Assembly (NCBI GenBank): GCA_002269645.1
Contig: NIVC01000972.1
Coordinates: 1-43,209, forward strand
Direction: 5' to 3'
From: Macrostomum lignano
Lineage: Eukaryota
DNA length: 43,209 bases
Shown: positions 3,133-43,209 of the stretch, piece after piece
How the letters are laid out: the number at the start of each line of letters is the position of its first letter
How positions within the stretch are numbered: the first letter of the stretch is position 1
Made by a program: the position numbers and the translations under genes
Notes under the pieces: model-generated
Told to the model about the DNA's origin: nothing
What the model saw: the letters and a program-made list of their open reading frames with translations, nothing else
The model's database searches: none

Positions 3133-3986
3133 AATGTCATAGATGCACGGCTAGCTTGATCTTGCAATAATGCCATAGATGTACGGCTTGATCTTGCAAT
3201 AATGCCATAGATGTACGGCTTGATCTTGCAATAATGCCTTAGATGCACGGCTAGCTTGATCTTGCAATAATGCCATAGATGTACGGCTTGATCTTGCAAT
3301 AATGCCATAGATGTACGGCTTGATATTGCAATAATGTCTTAGATGCACGGCTTGATCTTGCAATAATGCCTTAGATGCACGGCTTGATCTTGCAATAATG
3401 CCTTAGATGCACGTCTTGATCTTGCAATAATGCCTTAGATGCACGGCTTGATCTTGCAATAATTCCATAGATGCACGGCTTGATCTTGCAATAATGCCAT
3501 AGATGTACGGCTTGATCTTGCAAAAATGCCATATAGATTCACGGCTTGATCTTGCAATAATTTCAGAAATGCACGGCTTGATCTTGCAATAATGCCTTAG
3601 ATGCACGGCTTGATCTTGCAATAATGCCTTAGATGCACGGCTTGATCTTGCAATAATGCCTTAGATGCACGGCTTGATCTTGCAATAATGCCTTAGATGC
3701 ACGGCTTGATCTTGCAATAATGCCTTAGATGCACGGCTTGATCTTGCAATAATGCCTTAGATGCACGGCTTGATCTTGTAATAATGCCTTAGATGCACGA
3801 CTTGATCTTGCAATAATGCCTTAGATGCACGGCTTGATCTTGCAATAATGCCTTAGATGCACGGCTTGATCTTGCAATAATGCCTTAGATGCACGGCTTG
3901 ATCTTGCAATAATGCCTTAGATGCACGGCTTGATCTTGCAATAATGCCTTAGATGCACGGCTTGATCTTGCAATAATGCCATAGAC
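3133..3986. repeat. 32-bp minisatellite (gatcttgcaataatgcc[a/t]tagatg[c/t]acggctt)n, ~26 copies
   Basis: Tandem units read directly; explains the repetitive ORFs at 3063-3621. Confidence 0.95.
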
Positions 3987-5496: not shown

Positions 5497-5638
5497 CTGT
5501 AGAAGACAAACAGATTTATTTAAAAAAATTACCTGTAAAAGCATGCATCCACATGAAACATGATGCACAGGAAAGGAAATTTACTAAATTTATATTAACT
5601 CAAGGTAAGGCTGTTAAAGGAAACTTTAAATTTGTTTC

Positions 5639-6035
5639 TGGAATATAGAAAGTGACATTGGACTCGCTTCAGGAATATAGGAAGTGACATAGGACCCGCC
5701 TCAGGAATATAGGAATAGAGCATAGGACCCGCTTCAGGAATATCTAGGAATGTGACATAGGACCTGCTTCAGGAATATAGGAATAGAGCGTAGGACCCAC
5801 TTCAGGAATATCTAGGAATGTGACATAGGACCCGCTTCAGGAATATGGGAATGTGACATATAGGACCTGCTTCAGGAATATAGGAATGTGACATATAGGA
5901 CCTGCTTCAGGAATATAGGAATGTGACATATAGGACCTGCTTCAGGAATATAGAAATGTCACATAGGACTCTCTTCAGGAATATAGGAATGTGACAGCAC
6001 CTTCCTCAGGAATATTGGAATAGAGCATAGAAGCA
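5639..6035. repeat. ~32-36-bp degenerate minisatellite (caggaatataggaatgtgacataggacc[c/t]gctt)n, ~11 copies, intronic
   Basis: Tandem units read directly. Confidence 0.9.
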
Positions 6036-6492: not shown

Positions 6493-6979
6493 TTGGAGAA
6501 GCAACCTCATTTACTGACATCCACAAGCGATGTGGAGAAGCAACCTCATTTACTGACATCCACAAGCGATGTGGAGAAGCATCCTCATTTACTGACATCC
6601 ACAAGCGATGTGGAGAAGCATCCTCATTTACTGACATCCACAAGCGATGTGGAGAAGCATCCTCATTTACTGACATCCACAAGCGATGTGGAGAAGCATC
6701 CTCATTTACTGACATCCACAAGCGATGTGGAGAAGCATCCTCACTTACTGACATCCACAAGCAATGTGGAGAAGCATCCTCATTTACTGACATCCACAAG
6801 CGATGTGGAAAAGCATCCTCACTTACTGACATCCACAAGCAATGTGGAGAAGCATCCTCACTTACTGACATTCACAAGCGATGTGGAGAAGCATCCTCAT
6901 TTACTGACATCCACAAGCGATGTGGAGAAGCATCCTCATTTACTGACATCCACAAGAGATGTGGAGAAGCATCCTCATG
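6493..6979. repeat. 39-bp minisatellite (tgtggagaagcatcctcatttactgacatccacaagcga)n, ~12.5 copies, intronic
   Basis: Tandem units; a period divisible by 3 explains the three repetitive ORFs. Confidence 0.95.
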
Positions 6980-7196: not shown

Positions 7197-7667
7197 CTGA
7201 AAAGTGAATGAAAGTGTTTGAAATTCAGCACACGATTGGTAAGTAATGCAGACGCCTATGTGAGCTTATTATACGATTTTAATACGTCCTGTAACGGTAC
7301 GAAGTCGGTCATAGTTCTGGTGTTTTGTGCAGAGCTTCGTGCAGAATGCCTAGGCTAATGACCTGTACTAAAAAATTAAAGCCAGGCTTCTTAGGTTCAC
7401 TGGTCGTTGCCACATTGCTTTGTGGTTTAATTTATCCGGGCAAGTCGCGCGCCTAGCTTAAAAGATTTTGCGGAGAAACATCGAATGATTAGGAATAATT
7501 AAACAGGATTTTTATGCTTTTCTTTGATGCGAGCTCTCCTGGGAGTTGCCCCAGCGTGTCCCTGAGCATAGAAAGAGCAATAAGCCAAAGCGAATGGAGA
7601 CTGAGTGGACCGGAGGAGACCCGTCAGGAATAGCCGTTCCCCAGTGTGTTCGGGGGGGTTCACTTAC

Positions 7668-8645
7668 TATCGTAAGCCCGAGCTTGCCGTCGTTTCGCCT
7701 GAAAGTCGTTGGCGACTCCTGTCTGCTGTCATTCGCCGAGGACAGGTTGTGGAAGGAGTTGCTCAGGCCGGAAATGCGCCTGGCTTGGAGCTTGCTCATA
7801 CACTCCAGCGTGCGCTGTTCGAGGCGTCGCTCGCCGCGCAGCACAGCGTTGAGCGCCTCCTCCCAGCGTTTGAAGTCGAACCGATCGAGCGGTGTCAGGT
7901 AGACGCACTTCTTTGAGTTTGAGAAGCGCAGCACCAGAGTTTTGGCCGCGCCTCCGGTCATCGCTATGGCACCAGCCAGAAGGTCCTTCTTACCGGCGCC
8001 CACCGTGTCCTCAGTCACGTCCAGTTCCGATAAGTTTTCCAAGTCTATTTCGTACTCGGCATTACAGGCGCCGCTCCGCTTCTTGAACATGTACATCGTG
8101 CCGCCTTTCAGCACCGTCCACAGTTTCTGACGCTTGGCCTTGGCCTTCCTGGCTACGTTCATATTGCTCTCCAGATCGGCATTGGCGATGGCCCCGTAAA
8201 ACATTTTCGAGTTCTCAATGACCGGGGCGCTGAAGTTGAAGTAGCCCCACAGCGAGTCGAATTTCTTTTTAAAGAACTTGGTGGAGCAAGGACTGGACGA
8301 AAGCGGAACCTGCGACAGCAAGGACGCCTGGGAAACGTGACGCGACTGCGACTGCAGGCCAAGAAAGTTGGGCTTGGCCTCCAGCGGCAGAGACACGAAC
8401 AAGCTGGTAAGGTCCAGCTGCTTGGCAGCGCACAGCAGCTCGAATAGGCTCTGCGAGTTGAAGCTGGTTGGGGTGAACTCCATGCGGAGGCATTGCGATG
8501 ATATCATGATTGAGTAGCAGTTTATGATTTCAAGCCTGGCGTGGTGGAGAAACACAGTCAGGTGCGAGGTCATCTCGCTGCTCAGTGCCTGCCACTGCGC
8601 CTTGCTCATAACCTGGTCTGTCCAGCGAGTGATCTCGGCGGCGAC
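7668..8645 (-). CDS. PH-domain/coiled-coil protein, large exon carrying a pleckstrin-homology domain
   Basis: Open frame (ORF 7512..8609 extended to 8645); donor ata|gtaagt. PH-like signature KRQKLWTVLKGGTMYMFKK...EYEIDL...LVLRFSNSKKCVYL...FKRWEEALNAVL (beta strands plus C-terminal helix with the conserved Trp). The acceptor ctctctgaag| is weak; the in-phase cag at 8615-8613 is an alternative. Confidence 0.8.
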
Positions 8646-8679: not shown

Positions 8680-9158
<479 letters not shown>

Positions 9159-9770: not shown

Positions 9771-10346
<576 letters not shown>

Positions 10347-10483: not shown

Positions 10484-13444
10484 CTGCAATCAAAGAACTT
10501 TGGATACTCTAGTGCGAGGTGAACGTTCCACACATGGGGACAGTCGCGCTCACATTTAAACAGAGCTCTGGGAACCCGCTGGAAGATAGGGGAGAAATAG
10601 AAAACGGAGACGACAGAAAGAAGAAGAGGATGCAATGAAGATGAGAGGCTGAGGCATGGGATGGGGAGTAGCTGGGAACAGTTGGGTAGGTGAGGCGAGG
10701 ACGAGGCTCAGTGAGGGGGCGCGTGGGTGAGCATTCAGCCTCCCTGTCTCACAGAATGGCGAAGGCGCCGAGGGCAGCTCAGGGCAGTGGTTGTTCCCAC
10801 CTGTCAGGTGATTATCAACTGCTGTCTGCGCTGCCTGTCAGTCAGCCGACAGCTTACTTGTTGTGCTCCTGCTGTGCAAGTCATTCCAGATTCTAGCTGT
10901 GGTTCTCCTTGGCCAGAGATAAGAAGACTGTCTGGATAGAGCCTATATAGTATATAGGACATGTAAGCCATGAGATGGTCAGCTGATCAGCACTGACGCC
11001 TGTAACAGAAGCTGTTGTAACCTGCGGTTTTAACATAGCTAGAGTGTCTGATTTTTTACGCACAACGAGGATGCTGCTCACAACAAAAATGATTGTCAGC
11101 ATCTTCGGCAGTGGAGCCGAAGAATTTAAAGTCTTCTTATTCCAAGGAAATTCGCACTGAAAAGCTGACCAAATTAATCAATAATTTGTGACAGGCTAAG
11201 GCCAAAATCTTAGCCAGTCAAAATCATTTTTTTGAGATTTATTGTCGGCCTCTTTTCTTAAGAATTCGATTTACGGAGTACCATTTACCCCCCCCCCCCA
11301 AGGATCACTGTAATATAACAGGACGTTAAACTCAACGATTTTTGGAGGCCAGATTCCTCGAAAAAATACACTGCGGAGATAGGAAAAATCAATGATTGCA
11401 TTTGATTTGGTGCAGTGAAGATTAGAATTCTTTTTATTTAACAAGCGCAACAGGAAAGTTTCATTTTCATACTATTTTGTTAATTTCATAAGCCTAAAGT
11501 TTCATGGGCTTGTAGGAACTAAAGTTGAGCCAATGCCACTTGTGAGTATTAAAAAATTATGCATATTTAAGCATAATTAGCTACATCTTATACGAGTACT
11601 CAAAGTTCAAATACAATCCTTTGAGAACAAGCTGCTGTCCGAAAATTCGTAGCCGCATCCTTGACGTCGCACTGTATAGCAGACACCGCTGCGACACTGA
11701 AGATTGGCAGAGTTTAACTAAACCTCATCTTAAACTGTCTCTCTCCTCTGTCGAGGGCTTAGGCTAGGACTTCAGGTGTGTTCCGACTCTTCCCTCTACC
11801 TTATTGCTGCGTTTTGCGTGCAGCTCTCTGTGTCCGCCATCCTTTCTCTTTCTACTCGACTTTGACTGTGCAGACCCAGGTGCTTGAGGCTTATAGTTGA
11901 GCCCTTCCCAGATGCACAAAGCGTATTGACTGCGTTTGTATCCGAACTATGCATGGAGAGGATAGAGGGAGAGAGAGAGAGAGAGATAAGAGGGGAATAA
12001 ACAGCCGGTCGACTCCCCCAGCTCACCGTTTTGCGCGCTACATAATTCAAAAGCGAATCACCTGGGGGGGGAGGCTGCATTTAAGCATTGAAGCGCTGGC
12101 GATCTGCTTTCTCGCTACCAAAAATACCCACAGCCTCTCTCATGCGTCCCCGATGCTTGCATAGATTTGAATTTGCTGAAAAGAATAGGGAGATGCAGGG
12201 AGATAAACGAAAAGATTACTTTATAAATTGCTCAGCTTGTCACATTTCTTCAGAGGATGTGAGCTCACTGTATCCCTGTCTCGTATCTTTGAAAATAGGC
12301 AAAGCGTTTGCAAGCAAAAACGATGAAATCAAGCCGCTATAGGGAGATTTCTCTTCAGCAGAGGCAAAATATGGAAAGAATTGTCCCAAAGACAGAAAAT
12401 AAAGTATTTGCAGAAATGCTTCAGCAAAAAACCCGCTTTTTGTTGGCAAAATCAGATGAAACACAAGCTGTAGTGAGTAATCTGAGTGTACTTTAGCAGA
12501 TAAGAAAAATTTGTCCTTCTTCGTCAATAAAAGCTGCACTTCAGCCTCGGCAAACTATCAGCTGCGTTAAACATTCTCTATGACGTCAGAGTCACTCCAG
12601 ACTGGATGCTGCCGAGCTGCTTTTCGGCCTCTGCATTCCGGACGACTTCGAGACAAGGCACTGAGATCGCGATGGTGGACAGGCAATGGGGAGCTACAGC
12701 GAAGTTGTCTGCAGTTCTTCTACCTCAAACGGTCTGGTTCCTGACGTCCGCGAGAATCTGCGATGCTCGCCTTTTGTCCTGTGAGGGCGTTGATGCCAGA
12801 GAGGTTGGCTCTGTTCCAAGCGATGGTCCCGGACCATCCATTCTGTTTCCTGTCGCCGTATTCAAACGCCGACTTCTACGATGGACTCTACTCCAGCTAT
12901 TAACTCCACACAAAATAAGTCTGTTTGCCCGCTTGTCAACTCCGAATTATACAGATGCACTCCATTTTGCATTGGTTTGAAGTGTACGCAGAGATGCCAC
13001 TTGAAATATTTCTGCTTTTTTTTCAAATAGCAACAATTTCTGCAAGCCCAGTACAAGGAAGCAATGCTGAAGGCTTCAAGTTGAAGTTATCGATTTTCGT
13101 GTTATTGAGGCAGGATTTCAAGTAACATGTTAGACTATTCATAACCAGTTGGGAAAGCATAGAATTCCGGTTTGTAAAAAAATCACTTGTAAAATCACTA
13201 ATTGTCAATAGTAGTTTTGATATCATTGTGCGCTCATTTTGCATTTGCTTTGCGAATAAAACTAAACTTATTCGATACAAAAATTAGCTTACATCAGACC
13301 ATATACTCTTGCCCTGTATGTTGCACTGACAAAAAAACCGAATTTTAACTAATATTTTTCTTTTGAAGCAACCCCAATAAGAATGACAATTTTTGTAATT
13401 CTATACTCAAAGTAAATATCCCTTTCAGGTTGTTACCGCGGCTG

Positions 13445-13980: not shown

Positions 13981-14938
13981 GCACTCATTTTGGTACCACA
14001 GGCACTCATTTTGGCGCCGCAGGCACTCATTTTGGCGCCGCAGGCACTCATTTTGGCACCGCAGGCACTCATTTTGGTACCACAGGCACTCATTTTGGCA
14101 CCGCAGGCACTCATTTTGGGGCCACAGGCACTCATTTTGGGGCCGCAGGCACTTATTTTGGCGCCGCAGGCACTCATTTTGGCGCCGCAGGCACTCATTT
14201 TGGCGCCGCAGGCACTCATTTCAGCGCTGCAGGCACTCATTTTGGCGCCGCAGGCACTCATTTTGGCGCCGCAGGCACTCATTTTGGCGTCGCAGGCACT
14301 CATTTTGGCGCCGCAGGCACTCATTTTGGCGCCGCAGGCACTCATTTCAGCGCCGCAGGCACTCATTTTGGCGCCGCAGGCACTCATTTTGGCACCGCAG
14401 GCACTCATTTTGGTACCACAGGCACTCATTTTGGGGCCACAGGCACTCATTTCAGCGCCGCAGGCACTCATTTTGGCGCCGCAGGCACTCATTTTGGCGC
14501 CGCAGGCACTCATTTTGGCACCGCAGGCACTCATTTTGGTACCACAGGCACTCATTTTGGGGCCACAGGCACTCATTTTAGCGCCGCAGGCACTCATTTT
14601 GGCGCCGCAGGCACTCATTTTGGCGCCGCAGGCACTCATTTTGGCACCGCAGGCACTCATTTTGGCACCACAGGCACTCATTTTGGGGCCGCAGGCACTT
14701 ATTTTGGCGCCGCAGGCACTCATTTTGGCGCCGCAGGCACTCATTTTGGCGCCGCAGGCACTCATTTTAGCGCCGCAGGCACTCATTTTGGCGCCGCAGG
14801 CACTCATTTTGGCGCCGCAGGCACTCATTTTGGCGCCGCAGGCACTCATTTTGGCGCCGCAGGCACTCATTTTGGCGCCGCAGGCACTCATTTTGGCGCC
14901 GCAGGCACTCATTTCAGCGCCGCAGGCACTCATTTTGT
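13981..14938. repeat. 21-bp minisatellite (gcactcattttggcgccgcag)n, ~45 copies, in the intron of the four-TM gene
   Basis: Tandem units; explains the MSACGAK and LAPQALI pseudo-ORFs. Confidence 0.98.
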
Positions 14939-14939
14939 C

Positions 14940-15066
14940 GCCCTGAAGCAAGATTATTAATTTCCATAACGGGTCACAAGGTTGAGTGGGGGGACAAAGC
15001 ATTGGCCACACATAGCTTTCACTGGGGAGACCTGCCCCCCTGGACCCTCCGGTGGCGACGCCCTTG
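14940..15066 (-). mobile_element. one end of a CAGGGGCGT-type (hAT-like) MITE abutting the 21-bp satellite
   Basis: Minus strand reads caagggcgtcgccaccggagggtccaggggggcagg, typical of invertebrate MITE termini; the partner TIR was not found. Confidence 0.45.
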
Positions 15067-15664
15067 ATCAACAATAATAAATATTGATAATTGTTAATTG
15101 TTTGCTGACTTTTCTCTTCACTAACCAAATGAGTATAATGGGTGTTTAATTAAAAAGTTCCACAAAAACTCTGCCGTTCTTGGTTGCGAGAAAGATTTAT
15201 AATTGCCCCTTGTTTTTCTTTTGCACGATACTACTTATAATAGCATCACTTGCTACTGCTGTAACCTGTAAGTTCATGATTTTTAGGCAAGTACCAAGAA
15301 TTGTTTTGCAGTTTTTGTAGGGGGGGGGGGGTTGCTGATTTCAAAGTTAGTTTTTTTAAAGACCATTAGAAACACTTGTAAACAACATTTGAATTTTAAA
15401 AATTCCTTTTTTGACCAATGGTTTAACCAGTTTTGGGTGTTTTCAGCATCAAATTTTCTCGTAGGAATTCTATATAGCTATCATTGGGTTTAACAATGGG
15501 AATTTCAAACAGGCCATGGGTGCTTAAAACTATTGCCATACCAAACAAAAGATCAATGTCTGACTCTATCACCGCCGCTGTGAACCCTGTGGGAGCTCAG
15601 AAGTCAGCGGAATGGGCAGTCCTGCCTCTGTGCCAGAAGTGACCCACATCGTCGAAGGCCTCAC

Positions 15665-16346
15665 CAAGCAGAATCGCGCACACGGTGGACTGTTTGCTTC
15701 TTGTTCTCTCGCTGGCAAGGTTGCGGCGGCGCAGGGCGGACGACATCGTTCCGGTCGACTTTCCGACCATGTTGGATTTGTCTGTACCACCGGCCGCGGC
15801 GGCCGCTGCGGCTGCGGCTGCTGCTGCTGCTGCTGCAACTGCCGCAGCTGCCACCTCCCTGATGTTGTCAGTGGCTACTCGTGCGACCCGGCCACCTCGA
15901 TTGTCCACCTGCGGCGGTACGTTGTTAATCGGCTGGTACTTCGGTATCATGCTCAGCTGCTGCTGCCGCTGCTGAGACTGTTGGTCCATGGCGTTCAAGT
16001 CGCCGCTCAGGTTGCTCACGTTAGACGAGTCTGCAACCGCAGTTTCTGGGTCATTCTGGCAGCCAATGTTGGCATCAAAGTCTGGCCCGTTCAAGCACTG
16101 CAGCAGCTCGCGCTTTGAAATGATTCGGCCGCAACGAGGCGGTCCAGAAAAGCTGGCCAAGCCGCTGTCCTCCGCTCCAGTCTCGCCGCTGCCGCCGCCG
16201 CCGCCGCCTCCGTCGCTTATCGAAGCCGCTGCAACCTCCAGCGGCGTGGGGGACAGCGGCTCCGGGGCCGGATAATGAACGACGGCTGTGTCGGCGAAGC
16301 GGACATTCAAGTGCGCATTCGAAGGTGCAGGCATTGAGGATTTCAT
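15665..16346 (-). CDS. four-TM protein (TMEM272-like), coding exon 1: low-complexity cytoplasmic N-terminus (polyG, polyQ, polyA) and start of TM1; spliced product 364 aa
   Basis: ATG at 16346 (ORF 15597..16346); donor ctgcttg|gtgagg in phase 1 joins exon 13857 to give a continuous helix STVCAILL-VFLLLILPITMVVG. Confidence 0.8.
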
Positions 16347-16524
16347 TGCCCGCGTCCGTTTTGAAAGAGGAGGTCGTTCTTAATTAACAATTAATGCGAG
16401 ATTCAGACTTTACCGGAATAAGCTCCAGTAACATCAGCTTTCAATCGTAAAGCCTTTGTGACATAGACTAAAATGCTCAGTCAAGTTTGGAAAGAGATTT
16501 TCAAGTCTAGGAATTCTGCATAGG

Positions 16525-16723
<199 letters not shown>

Positions 16724-17288: not shown

Positions 17289-17800
17289 CTCACTAGTAGC
17301 CTCAACTCCACCTCACTAATAGCCTCAACTCCACCTCACTAGTAGCCTCAACTCCACTCACTAATAGCCTCAACTCCACCTCACTAGTAGCCTCAACTCC
17401 ACTCACTAATAGCCTCAACTCCACCTCACTAGTAGCCTCAACTCCACCTCACTAATAGCCTCAACTCCACCTCACTAGTAGCCTCAACTCCACTCACTAA
17501 TAGCCTCAACTCCACCTCACTAGTAGCCTCAACTCCACTCACTAATAGCCTCAACTCCACCTCACTAGTAGCCTCAACTCCACTCACTAATAGCCTCAAC
17601 TCCACCTCACTAGTAGCCTCAACTCCACTCACTAATAGCCTCAACTCCACCTCACTAGTAGCCTCAACTCCACTCACTAATAGCCTCAACTCCACCTCAC
17701 TAGTAGCCTCAACTCCACTCACTAATAGCCTCAACTCCACCTCACTAGTAGCCTCAACTCCACTCACTAATAGCCTCAACTGCACTCACTAATAGCCTCA
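17289..17800. repeat. 45-bp higher-order minisatellite of alternating 22-bp (ctcactagtagcctcaactcca) and 23-bp (ctcactaatagcctcaactccac) units
   Basis: Read directly; explains ORF 17438..17785. Confidence 0.95.
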
Positions 17801-18498
17801 CCCTCACCTGTCCCAATCTACGCTCGTAATAGCCCGCTGATTGAGTAGCTATTTCAATGGCTCTACCAGTGTTGATTTTGTCAGTGGAAATATTTCGAAT
17901 CGCAATTTATTTGCTTACCAAGAAAATCAGATCCCTGCAGGTTTAGTTTACCTAGCAAATAAAATTCTGACAGATGAGTATTTCCTAGAAAACATTTTCC
18001 GCTGAAGCTGCGACAGTCATTACTCTTATCTTGAGTCCTCTTAATACTGTCTGACTAGGCATGTAAATTCCGTGATGCTAGAGTACTTCTCTTCACTTGG
18101 GATGGCTCAGGAAATGTGCTCCAATTTTTATGGACATTTCTTCAGATTGACTGTCGGTTTAAGAAAAATTATGCTTAAAATTTCTAAAATTTTGCTTACT
18201 CTCTCTCAAATCTGGGAAAAACGTTGCAAATGGGCAGCTCTCGTCAGGTTTCGTCATGTGCCCCCATCCCGCAAAGCCTTCACTAACCTATCTACTGGTA
18301 TTTCTGGAAATAAAACTACTCAAAGTAGCGCAAAAGCAAATTTGAATTACCTCCTAAACTATGTCCTTACTATAACAACACTTCATTAAATAATTTAAAA
18401 GATTATTTGTCAATGTTTGTGTCCATCATTTTCTGAGTTTGATCAAAAAACCAAGCAATCATTTTTTAGATTGGCACCGAATCATTCCTAGAAATCAG

Positions 18499-19134
18499 AT
18501 GATGAAGTATCCACTGCTTCTGCTGCTGGTAGTTTATGTTCTGCTGGACAATTTTGGTCAATTAGAGAGCGCTCTTGCTTCTAAGCGGGTGTTGGAGCGC
18601 GGTCTTGGAAAGCGAGTGATGTACTCTGGTCTGCTTGGAAAGCGAGAGATGTACTCCGGCCTACTTGGAAAGCGAGAGATGTACTCTGGCCTACTTGGAA
18701 AGCGAGAGATGTACTCCGGCCTGCTTGGAAAGCGAGAGATGTACTCTGGTCTGCTTGGAAAGCGAGAGATGTACTCTGGTTTGCTTGGAAAGCGAGGGAT
18801 GTACTCTGGTCTGCTTGGAAAGCGAGCGATGTACTCCGGCCTGCTTGGAAAGCGAGTGATGTACTCTGGCCTGCTTGGAAAGCGTGCGATGCACTCTGGC
18901 CTACTTGGAAAGCGAGAGATGTACTCTGGCCTGCTTGGAAAGCGTGCGATGCACTCTGGCCTACTTGGAAAGCGAGAGATGTACTCTGGCCTGCTTGGAA
19001 AGCGTGCGATGCACTCTGGCCTACTTGGAAAGCGAGAGATGTACTCTGGCCTGCTTGGAAAGCGAGAGATGTACTCTGGTCTGCTTGGAAAGCGAGAGAT
19101 GTACTCTGGTCTGCTTGGAAAGCGAGAGATGTAG
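18499..19134 (+). CDS. neuropeptide precursor (211 aa): signal peptide, VLERGL-amide and 17 x [E/V/G/A]M[Y/H]SGLL-amide
   Basis: Hydrophobic N-terminus MMKYPLLLLLVVYVLLDNFGQLESALA; every repeat ends G-KR (amidation plus dibasic cleavage); nucleotide differences between the 30-bp units are mostly synonymous (tct/tcc, ggt/ggc, ctg/cta/ttg, cga/cgt). ATG 18499 is preferred over the ORF track's non-ATG start at 18439. Confidence 0.95.
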   Translation: MMKYPLLLLLVVYVLLDNFGQLESALASKRVLERGLGKRVMYSGLLGKREMYSGLLGKREMYSGLLGKREMYSGLLGKREMYSGLLGKREMYSGLLGKRGMYSGLLGKRAMYSGLLGKRVMYSGLLGKRAMHSGLLGKREMYSGLLGKRAMHSGLLGKREMYSGLLGKRAMHSGLLGKREMYSGLLGKREMYSGLLGKREMYSGLLGKREM

Positions 19135-20784
19135 CCTGGTCTGCTCGGAAAAAGACACGAGCGTCAAAACAACAAAATTGAAGGGTCTTTAACAAAATAA
19201 GGACATTTGATTATTGGATGTATTTTACCACCTGATTGAGGAAAGATCTTTTCCCAACCCAATGGACTTATTGAAGTAAGCACATAAAATTGAGCTTCTG
19301 CAATTACAACACATGCACCACTTTCGTGTTGTTATTTAATTTACAAGCTTATAGTTTGCTGACAGGATGAAAAACTGTTCCGACACAGAAACTTTACGCT
19401 CGTAATCACATGCAGATGTTCTAAATTATGGTAAGACAAATGGCTTTATCTACTTGATTCTCAGTATCCCGCCGTAGGGGGTGTTGCAGAACTGAGCTAT
19501 GATGTACATCATCTATACATCTCATTTTCGATTCATGAAACTGCAATCATGAAGCTGATTCATTAAACTCTTGGGATATGCATGCATATATCGTGACCTG
19601 GCTTTCAATGGAAGAATGTGTCCTATGCTGCAGGGGCAGGCGAGCCCCTCATGCTCAATGCCATTCATCAGAAACTGCCAAGGGCTACAATATAATATGG
19701 ATATGCTGTACAAAGCTTAAAGCATATATAGTGCTAAATGAGATTTTGAAGAAATTTGCCATCGAATTGGATTTGTTCGATATACATCACATGTGCGTTA
19801 GATTCTAAAAGTACTATAAACTCAGTGCTCATATGAAATGTTTTATTAACAGTGGATTGCAACTATGTAGCCATAGGAACTGCTGTATGGATAAGGCATC
19901 AATTAAAAATATAATGTGATCGAAGCCATCCTGTTTTACTTTAAACGCCTGTTTGTAACAATGGAGCCCTTAATTAACTTGCCTAAAACCTCATATTTTT
20001 AATCCTCTCGACTCTAAATGTGGTAGTAATTATACATGTATATTACACACTCTCATGTACGTAGCATTTTATACATGCTTAAGGCAAGGGCCGGAATTCG
20101 ACCATTTCAAGAAAACTTGGGACAAAATGCCAATATGAATATCACCTCTTGTCTACTCGTATGTCTTTGTCTATACTGGTCCACAGGAGTCATAAACGGA
20201 CTGTATGGTGAAAGCCGCTTGACCTGAACGTTGTCCGGAATCTACAAGTCTTCGTCGGTGTCGTTAACTTAAAAAAATGTATCTAATCTGCAAAACTCTC
20301 TGTCGAAATAGAATGTAAACTTGTTTGTTTGTAAACTTTTTTTCTTTTGAACTTCAAATCTGCGCGTGCGCGTCACACAGGGACAGTTTCGGCCACAGAC
20401 AGTCTGAATTGGATTTCATCTGTTTCAATTAGATATGGACTTTGCTTGAGTTAAACTTCCACAAGCGCTGAGATTTCTCAAGTGTTTAAGTGCAAGTTCT
20501 GCTTGTTTAATTCTTTTGAACAAGACGTACTTTGGTTCAAAATACATGTAGGAGGTAAAAAAAGTGTTAGTGCCATAATTGCCGCATGAGGGATAGAATG
20601 AGGTGTCTCAATTTGTTTTTCTTGTTATCTGATCTTACGCTTGGTAAACGGAAAAGTTATCGCGGTTTGATAAAGCTTGAACTATGGTTTGAGTTAAAGT
20701 CTGAACATCTTTACATCTGCATATACATGTACATCATTTCACGCCTTTTGCCTCAAGGGCCAGATAGAGAATATGCCGCATTAC

Positions 20785-24917: not shown

Positions 24918-24996
24918 ACCCCCCTCCCCACGGTCTCTGACTGCGAAGACTCAAATTATAAACCAACAAGTGGCAAATTCCCTCAATGTTTAACAG

Positions 24997-25705
24997 CGGC
25001 GTGTCCACGCTGAAGAAGGAGCGGCTGTTCCTAGCTGGGTCAGTGTACGTGGGCAGCCGCATGCGACACAAGTTCAGCTCCACCGGTGACGGGAACGGCT
25101 ACAGCTATCTGAATACCTACGATGACATCGCCGTCTGCGAGAGCCCCAGTTTCAAGGCGCCAGTTAATAAAGACTTGTCCACCAGGCCTAGCGTTGGGAA
25201 AAACTACTCATATTTTGTGTGCCCCACTGACGCTATCGGATGGAATTATGATGAAGATTCTAAATATTGCTGCGGTAAAGAGGAACAGAGATGCTGCGAT
25301 GAAGAGGAATTTTATAGATATCACGGCGATGCTGCTGTATTCGGGCCCGTGTTGGCAGTCCTGTTGGTGTCAATTATACTGTGCTGTTGCTGTTGCTGCG
25401 GGGCCGGTTTCGGCATTTACCTATACATCTCGCGACAGAATCAACGCAATCGAAACGTGCCGCAGCCAAACGCCGTTGCGCATCCACCGATGCAAATGGC
25501 CGGCCCGCCTGTGCCCTACGCTCCTGTTCCAGGCAGTGCTGTCGCTACTAATTTACCTACGGCTACTTATCCTAGACAGCCTATGGGACACGATCCTGCT
25601 GTGCCAGCATCCGCTCCACCTGCCGATGCCGGTTTCAGCGGCTACCCAGCGATCCAGGCGCCGCCGCCAGCTTATTCTCCTCCGGAAGACAAATCGTACC
25701 AATGA
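24997..25705 (+). CDS. Shisa/CX-like protein, terminal exon (Cys-rich module, TM, poly-Cys, Pro-rich tail with PPxY); spliced product 319 aa
   Basis: Acceptor aatgtttaacag|c in phase 2; YFVCP..KYCCG..RCC module, TM GPVLAVLLVSIILCCCCCCGAGFGIYLYI, PPPAY near the C-terminus; TGA at 25703-25705. Confidence 0.85.
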
Positions 25706-34254: not shown

Positions 34255-34770
34255 AATCTACCCATGAGTCATATCTTAGCAATTCCCCCATGAGTCTAAT
34301 ATTTCAGCAATTCCCCCATGAGTCTAATAACTCAGCAATTCCCCCATGAGTCTAATATCTCAGCAATTCCCCCATGAGTCTAATATCTCAGCAATTCCCC
34401 CATGAGTCTAATATCTCAGCAATTCCCCCATGAGTCTAATAACTCAGCAATTTCCTCATGAGCCTTGACATCTCAGCAATTCCCCCATGAGCCTTGACAT
34501 CCCAGCAATTCCCCCATGAGCCTTGACATCCCAGCAATTCCCCCATGAGCCTTGACATCTCAGCAATTCCCCCATGAGCCTTGACATCCTAGCAATTCCC
34601 CCATGAGCCTTGACATCCCAGCAATTCCCCCATGAGCCTTGACATCTCAGCAATTCCCCCATGAGCCTTGACATCCCAGCAATTCCTCCATAAGCCTTGG
34701 CATCCCAGCAATTCCCCCATAAGCCTTGACATCTCAGCAATCGCCCCAATGAGCCTTGGCATCTTAGCAA
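34255..34770. repeat. 28/29-bp minisatellite (cagcaattcccccatgag[tctaatatct|ccttgacatct])n, ~17 copies
   Basis: Read directly; two unit variants segregate left and right. Confidence 0.95.
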
Positions 34771-34974
34771 TAATATTTTGCTTTGAGTAAAAAAAACAAT
34801 GCAATTAGCAATTATATGCTATGATAAAATATGTACATATTAAGTAGAATTTAAGAAAGCTAATATGAAATTTTCTGTTGTATTCAAAAGTGCATTCCAG
34901 TTAGTTTATGTTTTTTTGTTTTTAAATGTAGGTTCATATTTAAATTGATATTTCACTTGGATCGCCAATTTCAG

Positions 34975-35030: not shown

Positions 35031-36125
35031 GTAAGTATCCGGTCTCTTTTCATGATGTCATAGAAGGCATCAAGTTTTAGATATTGGAAAAATCATGTTT
35101 TTTTACATTTTATTACGACTGAGTCAGGAAGCACTACTATTAGTAATTCCGTGGTGTCAGACACCGCGTGACAGAGTCGGAGGGCAAAGGGGCAGCTGCT
35201 TTTTGATATGGAGATTATTGCGGAGTCCAGTACCCCCCCCCCCCAGTGATATTAAAGCGTCATGTTAAGACCTATGAGTTTTGAACCAAATTTATAAAAA
35301 AAGCACTCTGTATGTACGTTGAAGTTGCCTCTAGAATCGCAGTGCCATTTCGACGTCCTAGGTCCATCAAATTCAGGAAATTCAGCCAAATTGAAAACCT
35401 CAACATATCTGCAATATATTTTACACTGCCGAGTCTTTAAATCCCAGTAATTGTTTAAGTACGAGTATAGGTAGTTTAAACGAAATGAGTTATAGAAAAT
35501 ATGGAACTCATTTAAATGCGTCCAGGTTAGAAAAAAACAGGATGCCAACTTGGTATCCGATCAGAGGTTCGAATTCAGGATGCCAAAATTAGTTGATGTG
35601 TCATGACATATAACTTTGTGAAAATGATAAAATGAAAGTGTGACTCCATTGATTTGGGTATTGGGATGAGATTAGTTGAGGCAGAAGTTTTAGTCTACCC
35701 AGCAGTTACCTGTATACTCGATGATACTCTACAGGGTGTCCGTAGCCTCAAAAAACCTGAGATAGCTCCGCCTCTCCAAAAAAATGAAAACTTAGAAACC
35801 TGGATTTGAGACCATGACTGTAAAATGCATACTTACCATTCGGTTTGTCTATGGCCCAAAGCATATGCGCTAGTATAGGTGTTCGGTCTTCCTCCCTGCA
35901 TGCGTACAGAGCTAGTTAGCATTTGGCTGCTGAGTGTCATAACCCTGGCGTTTAGGCGCCAATAAAAAGTTTGAGAGATATAGTTTTCAAAGTTCCATTC
36001 TGCTCTAACTTGATTATTTTCTTCACAATGAGAGTAGCTACTAGGATAGAATGTAATTCTTGTGCAAGAAATTTTCCTCAAAATTCGGGATTTAGCATTC
36101 TGTGCCGTGATACCATTTGCTTCAG

Positions 36126-36714
36126 TTTCCCGTCGTTAGTATTCGACCAGTCGTCGGGCTCCTCGAGCGGTCGGCATCATCACCAGCGTCATCATCCCTA
36201 CGCTTATTCACTATTCTCTAGCGCCTCGTCTGACCGCGCGGGCACCGAAGTTTCTGACAGCGGTGCCGCCGGAGCTTCCAGCTCGTCAGCTGGCGCCGGC
36301 AGCGAGGTGTACAGACTGCGACTAAGCCGATCTGGCGGCGGAGCGACCGGCGGCGGTGCTTCGGGCGGTGCAAGCGCCAGTGTAGTTGGGCAGGGCGAGT
36401 TGGACCAGCTCATCCAGAGCCTGTTCCAGCAGGTGTTTGGCATTGTTGGCGATTTAGACAATTACGCACTAGGCGTTGAAAGTCTGGACAATGTGGTCAC
36501 GCAGCTGATGAACCAGCTCGATGGCGGCGGGCCGCCTCCGGCTACGCCTGACGATATGCGCCGAATCCAGTCAGTGGCCGTCACTGAACAGCAGCAGTCG
36601 GACAAGCTGCAGTGCTCCGTGTGCTTCGACGAATTTTTACTAGGCTGCTATGTTGACCAGCTGCCCTGCCAGCACTGCTTTCATCACAACTGTATTCGGC
36701 CATGGCTGGAGAAG
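36126..36714 (+). CDS. RNF115/RNF126-like: RNF115/RNF126-like, coding exon 3 (linker, NYALG..LDNVVTQLMNQL..GPPPA motif, most of RING-H2)
   Basis: Acceptor ccatttgcttcag| in phase 2; CSVC..LPCQHCFHHNCIRPWLEK; donor aag|gtttgc. Confidence 0.92.
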
Positions 36715-37019
36715 GTTTGCTTAAATTGATTTATTGTCAATTATAGCTTGTCTGCTTGATTATTTGTCTGCAAGGAGAAATTATCCAGCGATAAAATGAT
36801 GGCCATAGGTTGCGAATAAACAAAACCATGGTTTAATGCTTTAATTATCCTTAATTTCGACAAGCAAGTCTTCGAAAAAATCAATTAAAACAGACAAAGT
36901 TGCTTTTCAAGTAAATTTAGATTATCTTTCTCTAAAATACTACTGCACACAGCAGAAACAGTAGTAGTATAAGTTGGCAAATTTTTGCTTTAATTGAAAT
37001 CCGATTCTCAACTCTGTAG

Positions 37020-37334: not shown

Positions 37335-37670
37335 CGCGGATAGAAGGACCTACGGCACCCCTTTCCCCGCTGCTACGGATGCGCGAGTAATCCCCGTGTC
37401 CGCATTCCATTTATCAGTATGCATCCCTATTGCTGAACTAATGCTGTAAGTCACTGTGGCTAACAAGCAAATGTAGAGCCGAGGTTTTATTTATGAAGCA
37501 AAAAAGTCGCAGAGCTGATTTTCAAGCTCGCCTGCTAATAACAATAATATTAATGATAACAATGTTAAGTATTATTCACAGATACTAGGATAGCTGGATT
37601 TGTCACCCGTTTAATCTGCACCAATCGCCTCTGGCTTTCCTGGCTCTGCCCGCGCTGGTGTCGACTTCTA

Positions 37671-37960
37671 TCCTCACTGCTCTCTCATAGGCTGAGCCAG
37701 ATTGAGCCTGTCCCCTAGGCTGAGTTTCGTCCGTCTGACTTTGATCTCTCTCCTCACTGCTCTCTCATAGGCTGAGCCAGATTGGGCCTGCCCCCTAGGC
37801 TGAGTTTCGTCCGTCTGACTTTGATCTCTCTCCTCACTGCTCTCTCATTGGCTGAGCTAGATTGGGCCTGCCCCCTAGGCTGAGTTTCGTCCGTCTGACT
37901 TTGGTCTCTCTCCTTACTGCTCTCTCATTGGCTGAGCCAGATTAGGCCTGCCCCCTAGGC
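37671..37960. repeat. 80-bp tandem repeat, ~3.6 copies
   Basis: Units start at 37671, 37751, 37831 and 37911. Confidence 0.95.
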
Positions 37961-39020
37961 GTTCACTTGTGCACATCAAGTTATATGATTGTCGTTCTTA
38001 ATCCCATATTCTCCTGAGGTCACAAACCCCAGAGGAAGGAAAGGAAATTTTAGCTGCCAGATTAAATTTAAGTGACACTGCGCAAACAAACTACTAAAAA
38101 AGTAGACGCGCTGCTTTTTCACATCTTTAATTGCGCGTGGCGTATTCAGTTATGCTGATATTTGTGCTATTATTATGTTGCCATTAATATGTTTTTTCTT
38201 CCCTTTTAAGTCTGTCAAGACTGTCCAGACTATTCAAGGGACAATTTTCGTCCCAGACTTTAACAAAGGTTACTTATATAAAAAATTTTGTTGGCTTTTA
38301 CTTTAGTTAATTGTATTATTGCTTGCTTGTTAAGTAAATAATTTTTTAAACAAACAAAATGTTGCTAAGTTTTGGGTGCCGCTATTATTATTAATTTCTT
38401 TGAGTCTTATAAACTTATTACTAATGTATGAGTTGGGCATTTCAGAGTAAAACTTTCTATTTTTTCTGCTATGGTAAAATATATCTTTTTAATTTGTTCT
38501 TGAAATTGCAAGGTTTAAAGGTACGAGTTGTTTTAGGCCCCGAAAACTCAGTTAACTACTCTTAAGTAATCTTGTTCTAATTTTAATTACATTTTTATGC
38601 TCTGTATAAGAGAAAAAATGTAATGTAAGACAAATTTTAGGCTCGTTTATTTAAACCAGTGTGTGATGGATCGTAAGGTAGTTATTTTTAATATCGCCAA
38701 AACAAGTCGCGAAGCAATGTACTTTTCTTTCTAGCAACTTAAGCGTGTCTGACTGCACTTCCCGATCAGATCTGTTACTTCGATAAGAAAAATATATGCT
38801 CTTGTTATATTTGTACTCTGCCGTGTGCAGTGTTGGCTACCTATTTCAGCATGTGGTGGCTTTATAAGTTTGTTAAATCTTAAATATATGTTTCTTTAAC
38901 TGTTAACCTGTTTCTTGGTTCTTATATTCGTAATTTAACGACACTGGTCATTGGTCAATATTTATGGTGGCAACTCTCTTTAAAAATAATCCTGCAGACT
39001 CCGGGTAGAATCAGCATAAG

Positions 39021-40350
39021 CAATTCTACACGCTACGGGTGGACATTACTCATAGGCAACCAATTCTACACGCTACGGATGGACATTACTCATAGGCAAC
39101 CAATTCTACACGCTACGGGTGGACATTACTCATAGGCAACCAATTCTACACGCTACGGATGGACATTACTCATAGGCAACCAATTCTACACGCTACGGAT
39201 GGACATTAGTCATAGGCAACCAATTCTACACGCTACGGATGGACATTACTCATAGGCAACCAATTCTACACGCTACGGATGGACATTACTCATAGGCAAC
39301 CAATTCTACACGCTACGGATGGACATTACTCATAGGCAACCAATTCTACACGCTACGGATGGACATTACTCATAGGCAACCAATTCTACACGCTACGGAT
39401 GGACATTACTCATAGGCAACCAATTCTACACGCTACGGATGGACATTACTCATAGGCAACCAATTCTACACGCTACGGATGGACATTACTCATAGGCAAC
39501 CAATTCTACACGCTACGGATGGAAGATTAATCATAGGCAACCAATTCTACACGCTACGGATGGAAGATTAATCATAGGCAACCAATTCTACACGCTACGG
39601 ATGGAAGATTAATCATAGGCAACCAATTCTACACGCTACAGATGGAAGATTAATCATAGGCAACCAATTCTACACGCTACAGATGGAAGATTAATCATAG
39701 GCAACCAATTCTACACGCTACGGATGGAAGATTAATCATAGGCAACCAATTCTACACGCTACAGATGGAAGATTAATCATAGGCAACCAATTCTACACGC
39801 TACGGGTAGAGGATTAGCCATCCATAGACATTATCGATTCTGCACTCTCTGGGTAGAGAATTAGCCATAGACATAACCAATTCTGCATTATCCAGGTAGA
39901 GGATTAGCCGTAGACGTAACCGATCATGTCCGCTCCGGGTAGAGGATTAGCCATAGACGTAACCGATCCTGCACGCTACGGGTAGAGGATTAGCCATAGA
40001 CGTAACCAATCCTGCACGCTACGGGTAGAGGATTAGTCATAGACATAACCAATCCTGCACGCTACGGGTAGAGGATTAGCCATAGACATAACCAATCCTG
40101 CACGCTACGGGTAGAGGATTAGCCATAGACATAACCAATCCTGCACGCTACGGGTAGAGGATTAGTCATAGACATAACCAATCCTGCACGCTACGGGTAG
40201 AGGATTAGCCATAGACATAACCAATCCTGCACGCTACGGGTAGAGGATTAGCCATAGACATAACCGATTCTGCACTCTCTGGGTAGAGAATTAGCCATAG
40301 ACATAACCACAATTCTGCATGATCCGGTTAGAGGAGTAGCCATAGACATA
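39021..40350. repeat. 40/41/43-bp minisatellite array (caattctacacgctacggatggacattactcataggcaac and derivatives), ~31 units
   Basis: Periods of 40 (39061 to 39101), 41 (39541 to 39582) and 43 (40081 to 40124) measured directly. Confidence 0.95.
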
Positions 40351-42897: not shown

Positions 42898-43209
42898 GTC
42901 AGTCAGTCAGTCAGTCAGTCAGTCAGTCAGTCAGTCAGTCAGTCAGCCAGTCAGTCAGTCAGTCAGTCAGTCAGTCAGTCAGTCAGTCAGTCAGTCAGTC
43001 AGTCAGTCAGTCAGTCAGTCAGTCAGTCAGTCAGTCAGTCAGTCAGTCAGTCAGTCAGTCAGTCAGTCAGTCAGTCAGTCAGTCAGTCAGTCAGTCAGTC
43101 AGTCAGTCAGTCAGTCAGTCAGTCAGTCAGTCAGTCAGTCAGTCAGTCAGTCAGTCAGTCAGTCAGTCAGTCAGTCAGTCAGTCAGTCAGTCAGTCAGTC
43201 AGTCAGTCA
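42898..43209. repeat. (GTCA)n microsatellite running off the window end
   Basis: Read directly; one gcca variant. Confidence 0.99.

Follow-up and report, generated by a model that had tools for sequence, protein, structure and literature searches.

The stretch analysed here (the window) comprises 43,209 nucleotides (nt) of Macrostomum lignano DNA (contig NIVC01000972.1, assembly GCA_002269645.1, positions 1–43,209 of the forward strand) and carries, at 18499–19134 on the plus strand, an open reading frame (ORF) that, judged from its sequence, is likely to be a protein-coding gene whose product is a secreted neuropeptide precursor of the multi-copy type and which adds a new member to a flatworm [F/Y]-x-G-L-L-amide group (Table 1). 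ATG 18499 is the first in-frame ATG past the upstream stop. The encoded N-terminus starts with MMK and continues into a 13-residue hydrophobic core, with a maximum Kyte-Doolittle mean over 10 residues of 3.41; the signal peptide was called heuristically from hydrophobicity alone, and its predicted cleavage site was placed by the −3/−1 rule. The intact repeat units that follow encode EMYSGLL (ten units), AMHSGLL (three), VMYSGLL (two), GMYSGLL and AMYSGLL (one each), with GKR after each; G-K-R closes 18/18 units in one frame, and K-R precedes the first unit. Tandem Repeats Finder (TRF) reports a period of 30 nt, 18.3 copies and 91% matches over 18604–19151. An earlier reading of the letters without database searches (the sequence-only reading) had claimed this ORF layout, these unit counts and a signal peptide, all of which were reproduced exactly by our own reading of the sequence, the ORF list and the translation.

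The array shows several further details. The Arg codon of the first dibasic site is CGG, versus CGA/CGT within the array, and the 3′ half of the degenerate VLERGLGKR unit (GGT CTT GGA AAG CGA) is that of the repeat, with an in-frame 3-nt gap seen on by-eye comparison with unit 1. Since the three copies of the higher-order block differ so little from one another, the three His variants are traced to one mutation amplified by recent unequal crossing-over. Past the TAG at 19132–19134 the same frame stays open until TAA 19198–19200; the TAG therefore looks like a nonsense mutation that hit the last unit and cost one diverged copy, and the precursor probably once ended with the in-frame relic tail beyond it, which is now 3′ untranslated region.

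Table 1. Features of the predicted SGLL-amide precursor gene and its flanks (window coordinates)
Feature	Position	Strand	Description and basis
Polypyrimidine-AG motif	18462..18469	+	TTTTTTAG, ~30 nt upstream of ATG; sequence read
Complete precursor coding sequence	18499..19134	+	211 aa + TAG, single exon; sequence read, ORF list, unit-by-unit translation
Signal-peptide-like N-terminus	18499..18579	+	MMKYPLLLLLVVYVLLDNFGQLESALA; basic n-region, 13-residue hydrophobic core, A-L-A before Ser28
First dibasic processing site (predicted)	18580..18588	+	S-K-R; translation
Degenerate first unit	18589..18615	+	VLERGLGKR, predicted to give VLERGL-amide; sequence read, translation
17 intact 30-nt units	18616..19125	+	Each xM[Y/H]SGLL + G (predicted amide donor) + KR (predicted cleavage site); TRF, translation
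Higher-order repeat	18886..19065	+	60-nt block AMHSGLLGKR-EMYSGLLGKR x3, 0–1 differences between copies
Decayed 18th unit	19126..19155	+	EM*PGLLGKR; TAG 19132–19134 in place of the Tyr codon, also S->P and three silent changes
In-frame relic tail (putative)	19156..19200	+	HERQNNKIEGSLTK, ending at TAA; sequence read, inference

The combination of features at this locus is unique within the window. Among the 10 tandem arrays, each read in six frames, the SGLL array alone has an open frame together with a signal-like hydrophobic start and G-K-R in every unit, and in a scan of ATG-started ORFs over the whole window 18499–19134 alone pairs a signal-like start with at least two G[KR][KR] sites.

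The pattern of variation between units shows that the coding sequence is under purifying selection on the C-terminal part of the peptide, with the N-terminal residue free to vary. When the window gene is pooled with a second M. lignano gene described below (33 units), 11/14 distinct variants of the MYSGLLGKR core prove silent where a fraction of 0.27 would be expected (P ~9e-5), which indicates purifying selection on the peptide; at the S-G-L-L-G-K codons of the pooled units every variant is silent (9/9), and Gly and Leu are each encoded by four different codons. The control arrays of the window showed no synonymous bias in any open frame. The proposal of the sequence-only reading that the units vary mostly synonymously holds for the conserved core; in the window gene alone, 5 synonymous stand against 4 non-synonymous variant types (P=0.05, or P=0.012 including the 18th unit; best of six frames). 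Three of these four non-synonymous types fall at the N-terminal residue, and the remaining one is Y->H. Neuropeptide families usually vary at the N-terminal residue and keep the C-terminal part.

A second SGLL-amide gene, PAA49395.1 (BOX15_Mlig004832g1, ‘hypothetical protein, partial’), on M. lignano contig NIVC01003891.1 (locus L001), came to light when 1.8 billion representatives were searched exhaustively with HMMER, so that M. lignano has at least two predicted SGLL-amide genes. The public model of PAA49395.1 is cut short by a 1-nt gap, one A missing from the GGAAAGCGA run (L001 ~10589–10600); once the missing A is put back, 16 clean units of the form [AD][MV]YSGLLGK[KR] can be read in the array. 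The gap is probably a long-read homopolymer error, and the resulting frameshift may explain the ‘partial’ label in GenBank. Like the window gene, PAA49395.1 has a single-exon coding sequence built on a unit of 30 nt and 10 residues, the two arrays being 85% identical at the DNA level, and it encodes [A/D]MYSGLL-amide, of which AMYSGLL matches one window unit exactly. It differs in its unrelated signal peptide (MMLKLCLFLLMPMVWG), in a first peptide, SIFSGVL-amide (SIFSGVLGKR), that stands after RR and is followed by an acidic spacer of ~50 residues, in some KK sites and in its C-terminal tail. The flanks of the two loci are unalignable and only the arrays align, implying that these are separate genes; EMYSGLL, AMHSGLL, VMYSGLL, GMYSGLL and VLERGL are encoded by the window gene and not by PAA49395.1.

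Following established prohormone biochemistry, from which the processing steps are inferred, the hydrophobic N-terminus would direct entry into the endoplasmic reticulum and then be removed, a prohormone convertase would cut after each Lys-Arg, a carboxypeptidase would trim the basic residues, and peptidylglycine alpha-amidating mono-oxygenase would turn each C-terminal Gly into an amide. Each precursor would then release 17 heptapeptides xM[Y/H]SGLL-NH2, ten of them EMYSGLL-NH2 (possibly partly in the pyroglutamate form), and one VLERGL-NH2, most likely acting as neuromodulators or hormones via a rhodopsin-type G protein-coupled receptor (GPCR). In M. lignano a homologue of prohormone convertase 2 shows a nervous-system pattern of expression, and knocking it down is lethal (PMC4490696). 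The earlier assignment of the ORF to a multi-copy precursor of amidated neuropeptides is well supported by the predicted translation, by the unique design within the window and by the selection on the core.

Several observations weigh against the interpretation of 18499–19134 as a neuropeptide gene of the [F/Y]-x-G-L-L-amide group. The window contains ~10 minisatellites, with periods of 20, 21, 23/45, 29, 30, 32, 35, 39 and 40 nt, several of which have long ORFs in more than one frame. The ORF terminates within the last repeat unit, and no canonical AATAAA lies within ~700 nt downstream of it. The synonymous excess in the window gene alone is marginal at P=0.05. The exact precursor product is not in the gene index, where the products of three neighbouring ORFs are likewise unmatched. 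Lastly, the link between the window gene and the planarian precursor discussed next spans only a 5–8-residue motif.

Relatives outside the SGLL-amide pair can be recognised in M. lignano itself and in a planarian. A third M. lignano gene, PAA58165.1 (locus L002), encodes a signal peptide followed by GAYYGLLGKR, GPYHRLLGKR, ten AG[Y/F]RGLLGKR units and RVYQRLLGKR, in a 10-residue register throughout, and the three M. lignano precursors have an invariant [Y/F]-x-G-L-L-G-K core in common. The secreted peptide prohormone-13 of Schmidtea mediterranea (Smed-spp-13) contains FRGLLGKR twice, and its FRGLL-amide was detected by mass spectrometry (MS) (Collins et al. 2010 supplements); it was classed as a ‘miscellaneous amidated peptide’ with no family assigned (Collins et al. 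2010). The literature searched held neither follow-up work on spp-13 or FRGLL nor a function or receptor for spp-13. In BLASTP comparisons spp-13 matches PAA58165.1 at E=1e-4, with FRGLLGKR identical, and the window protein at E=0.01, a motif-level similarity. Arrays are also 71–73% identical at the DNA level, a figure largely forced by the common GLLGKR codons.

Like the window gene, spp-13 and PAA58165.1 predict an aromatic-x-G-L-L-amide C-terminus with dibasic flanks and a Gly amide donor, and PAA58165.1 also keeps the 10-residue register: the ending is Y-S-G-L-L in 14/17 window units (His replaces Tyr in the other 3), FRGLL in spp-13 and [Y/F]RGLL in PAA58165.1. They differ from the window gene in having Arg at −4, where the window peptides have Ser, and A-G rather than x-M before the aromatic residue, and spp-13 has 2 copies only. 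We place the window gene firmly with PAA49395.1 and regard PAA58165.1 as the probable M. lignano counterpart of Smed-spp-13; that the window gene, PAA58165.1 and spp-13 form one flatworm [F/Y]-x-G-L-L-amide group is the slightly favoured view. Members of such a group in both a macrostomid and a planarian point to a signalling system of long standing in flatworms. Of the three assignments that the sequence-only reading had offered, a lineage-specific family best fits the evidence from PAA49395.1, PAA58165.1 and the FRGLL-amide of spp-13.

Further sequences with GLL endings were encountered. Two environmental contigs of ~1 kb (L003 and L004, JGI sample 3300030741) contain GS[M/L/R]RGLLGKR arrays, preceded in both by a common Cys-containing segment (Y.CV.L.D...YCELIG.SSE.KR), from which it follows that at least one further organism has RGLL-amide designs. 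The planarian Smed-ppp-1 peptides (GAYYDPIGGGLL and YSYYDSIGSGLL; non-amidated; Collins 2010 supplement) end in SGLL/GGLL and both begin and end like the GAYYGLL-amide of PAA58165.1 (L002 ORF 8670–9275), which may reflect a link to the GLL-amide genes or chance; as a relative Smed-ppp-1 was set aside, the alignment being gapped and driven by periodicity (E=0.001), and it is retained as a lead only. The MMDPLASGLV-amide of the oyster (mollusc LASGLV-amide) has a comparable S-G-L-(V/L)-amide end, a likeness of four residues, but is longer and has Ala, not an aromatic residue, before Ser (PMC4200219). The trochozoan neuropeptidomes list no GLL-amide family.

With regard to novelty, no identical precursor was found in the literature or protein collections searched, the main flatworm neuropeptide precursor catalogues lying outside that search, so that an earlier naming is possible; queries for MYSGLL, SGLL-amide and GLL-amide returned nothing relevant in the main texts of the literature searched. 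What is new here is an apparently unannotated precursor. What was already known is that AMYSGLL-amide is predictable from GenBank PAA49395.1 and that the related spp-13 has been published in a catalogue since 2010. The reservation that it might already be catalogued is thus partly borne out, by these two entries.

It is unlikely, although some points favour it, that the [F/Y]-x-G-L-L-amide peptides fill the place of the missing flatworm tachykinins, ending in a chordate-like G-L-(M/L)-amide and acting on a receptor of the tachykinin clade. Y-S-G-L-L-NH2, and better the F-R-G-L-L-NH2 of PAA58165.1 and spp-13, line up with F-x-G-L-M-NH2, such that the window peptides and chordate tachykinins have in common an aromatic residue at −5, Gly at −3, Leu at −2 and an amidated hydrophobic end; protostome tachykinin precursors are multi-copy, as is the window precursor; zebrafish NKBb ends in FVGLL-amide; and the slot is open, no flatworm tachykinin having been found (PMC6880623). 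A study of monogenean transcriptomes reports GPCRs that cluster with tachykinin receptors, and receptor sequences of the thyrotropin-releasing hormone (TRH)/EFLG clade as well (PMC9645230). Against this, the window peptides have Tyr or His for Phe and Leu for Met or Arg, leaving only G and L identical to the chordate motif, with His in place of the aromatic residue in 3 units, and two fixed residues in five are well within the range of convergence for short amidated peptides. The protostome tachykinins in the literature consulted, oyster examples among them, end in F-x-G-x-R-amide, and a flatworm orthologue would be expected to do the same. The FVGLL-amide of NKBb was called deviant in a 2019 tachykinin review, which counts the FQGLL-type endokinins C/D as ‘not TKs’ (PMC6880623), and planarian and schistosome GPCRs are weakly or insignificantly similar by BLAST to tachykinin and many other receptor types (PMC3261222).

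No Pfam tachykinin model matched the window protein at E<=10, the sole result being noise and a spurious ITAM match (E=6e-18; 18616–19125), an artefact of the repeated Y-x-x-L of which no single stretch passes alone. An identical false ITAM match is precomputed for PAA49395.1 in GenBank. The tachykinin-like C-terminus noted in the sequence-only reading thus stands as an alignment of Y-S-G-L-L with F-x-G-L-M and does not extend to a Pfam match or to the units with His; so far the support for a tachykinin assignment appears to consist of this five-residue motif likeness alone. A canonical-looking FxGMR-amide precursor (P0133) was rejected as a flatworm tachykinin, since its source is a marine metatranscriptome and its taxon is unknown. 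If the tachykinin reading were true, the ‘deuterostome’ ending would be ancestral or have arisen twice.

Equally improbable, in our estimate, is that the window copy is silent or decaying, having arisen by recent duplication of the array and capture of an N-terminus, the functional SGLL-amide gene being the PAA49395.1 locus. The stop codon within the last unit and the lack of a canonical poly(A) signal nearby would fit such a history, as would the absence of the product from the protein collections searched, whereas the PAA49395.1 locus has a gene model. However, the signal peptide and 17 units are intact, free of frameshifts, and the stop costs just one already diverged unit; moreover, the spectrum of N-terminal residues (E/V/G/A) and the in-frame 3-nt gap in the VLERGL unit point to continued constraint.

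The EFLamide/GSEFLamide family, which we take to be the TRH-type family of protostomes, was absent from the options of the sequence-only reading, yet it is the source of the best database matches: in both searches the best-scoring genuine precursors were crustacean, with [AGR]MGSEFLGKR units. Could the SGLL-amide genes be diverged paralogues of this x-[MV]-x-S-E-[FY]-L-amide family? AMGSEFL and AMYSGLL have A, M, S and the terminal L-amide in common, in the same 10-residue register, and PAA49395.1 is laid out as the crustacean precursors are: the first copy stands apart behind RR, and an acidic spacer separates it from the array. The crustacean GSEFLamide/EFLamide precursors (for example Eriocheir sinensis P0001, Armadillidium P0097 and copepod APGSEFL forms) resemble the window precursor in their multiple copies, their period of 10 residues and their x-M-x-S-x-x-L-GKR skeleton, but their core is S-E-F-L where the window gene has S-G-L-L, so that the defining E-F is G-L here. 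Much of the match score is due to the GKR in common and to the repeat period being equal; precursors of the myomodulin-like and allatostatin-A types score too. In addition, M. lignano has its own RPVSE[F/Y]LGKR precursor (UniRef A0A1I8IPR6), which fills the orthologue slot; the SGLL genes are consequently not the EFLamide orthologue, and a paralogous origin seems to us quite remote.

Two side observations concern these database entries. UniRef A0A1I8IPR6 (P0070), a 727-aa M. lignano model labelled ‘uncharacterized’, comprises a signal peptide and ~10 RPVSE[F/Y]LGKR / RAVSEFLGKR units and is apparently a flatworm precursor of the EFLamide type, which the model joins to a low-complexity tail that is unrelated. 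The Eriocheir sinensis and Armadillidium vulgare precursors carry the NCBI name ‘ribosome-binding protein 1(-like)’, which looks like a repeat-driven misannotation. The top match of the exhaustive search (P0019, 4012 aa) and other long matches were discarded, being low-complexity proteins that are unrelated but also have a period of 10 residues.

A diverged member of the allatostatin-A/buccalin family ((Y/F)xFGL-amide or GGL-amide) acting on a galanin/allatostatin-A-type receptor, another assignment offered by the sequence-only reading, is very improbable. The first predicted peptide, VLERGL-amide, does end in GL-amide, and allatostatin-A precursors are among the weaker database matches, but their scores come from the GLGKR spacer and periodicity. 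The 17 main peptides end in GLL, not in FGL or GGL, and PF05953, which true allatostatin-A precursors in the same lists carry, is unmatched by the window protein even at E<=10.

The weakest alternative, that the locus is no gene but a 30-nt minisatellite left open by chance among the many arrays of a repeat-rich genome, can appeal to the ~10 minisatellites of the window (20–45 nt periods), several with long ORFs in 2–3 frames, and to the further open frames of the SGLL array, but is largely refuted, and retains hardly any probability, because a signal-like start with processing sites in every unit is found in no other array, at a second locus the same peptide array recurs in frame after another signal peptide, core variation is nearly all silent and a related peptide is MS-detected in planarians.

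A neuropeptide gene of the [F/Y]-x-G-L-L-amide group at this locus would matter in several respects. Links between the neuropeptide repertoires of flatworms and those of other bilaterians are poor, and the peptide receptors of flatworms are candidate targets for anthelmintics. With this locus, a peptide group of a macrostomid and a planarian gains a high-copy member that is apparently unannotated, and the window gene supplies a concrete, testable ligand candidate for an orphan flatworm peptide receptor. M. lignano is open to RNA interference and transgenesis, making the receptor clade for [F/Y]xGLL-amide directly testable, and the answer would settle whether flatworms possess a tachykinin-type system. 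The locus also carries a warning for annotation: where a genome is rich in repeats, genes of this kind are readily masked as minisatellites, homopolymer errors can truncate them, and they may be mislabelled, as when YSGLL is read as Pfam ITAM or crustacean GSEFLamide as ‘ribosome-binding protein 1-like’.

Upstream of the gene, the polypyrimidine-AG motif (Table 1) is a possible 3′ splice or spliced-leader acceptor, and a second CAG at 18496–18498 directly abuts the ATG. About 30% of M. lignano genes are trans-spliced to a spliced leader, with the acceptor motif [T/C]TNCAG (PMC8629364).

The remainder of the window is unusually dense in minisatellites (20–80 nt periods) and tetranucleotide microsatellites. 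The former lie at 1876–2062, 3154–3985, 5636–6021, 6494–6978, 13981–14942, 17289–17800, 34273–34771, 37667–37960 and 39015–40350, and 4-nt microsatellites at 8680–9158, 9774–10346, 16520–16723 and 42898–43209. Several repeats yield ORFs of 100–400 aa in 2–3 frames (e.g. KMSACGA x45 and CGEASSFTDIHKR x12) and could be mis-called as genes. The window contains no tRNA or Rfam features. A probable coding exon at 7512–8609 on the minus strand holds a 365-aa PH-domain ORF (weak match) that is 100% identical over the aligned part to M. lignano A0A1I8J31. Further probable coding exons, like it absent from the exact-product gene index, lie at 35971–36729 (+), 24986–25705 (+) and 15597–16346 (−); one is a RING-H2 finger ORF and two are without a Pfam match, one of the latter being rich in Cys and having a hydrophobic stretch and a tail rich in Pro.

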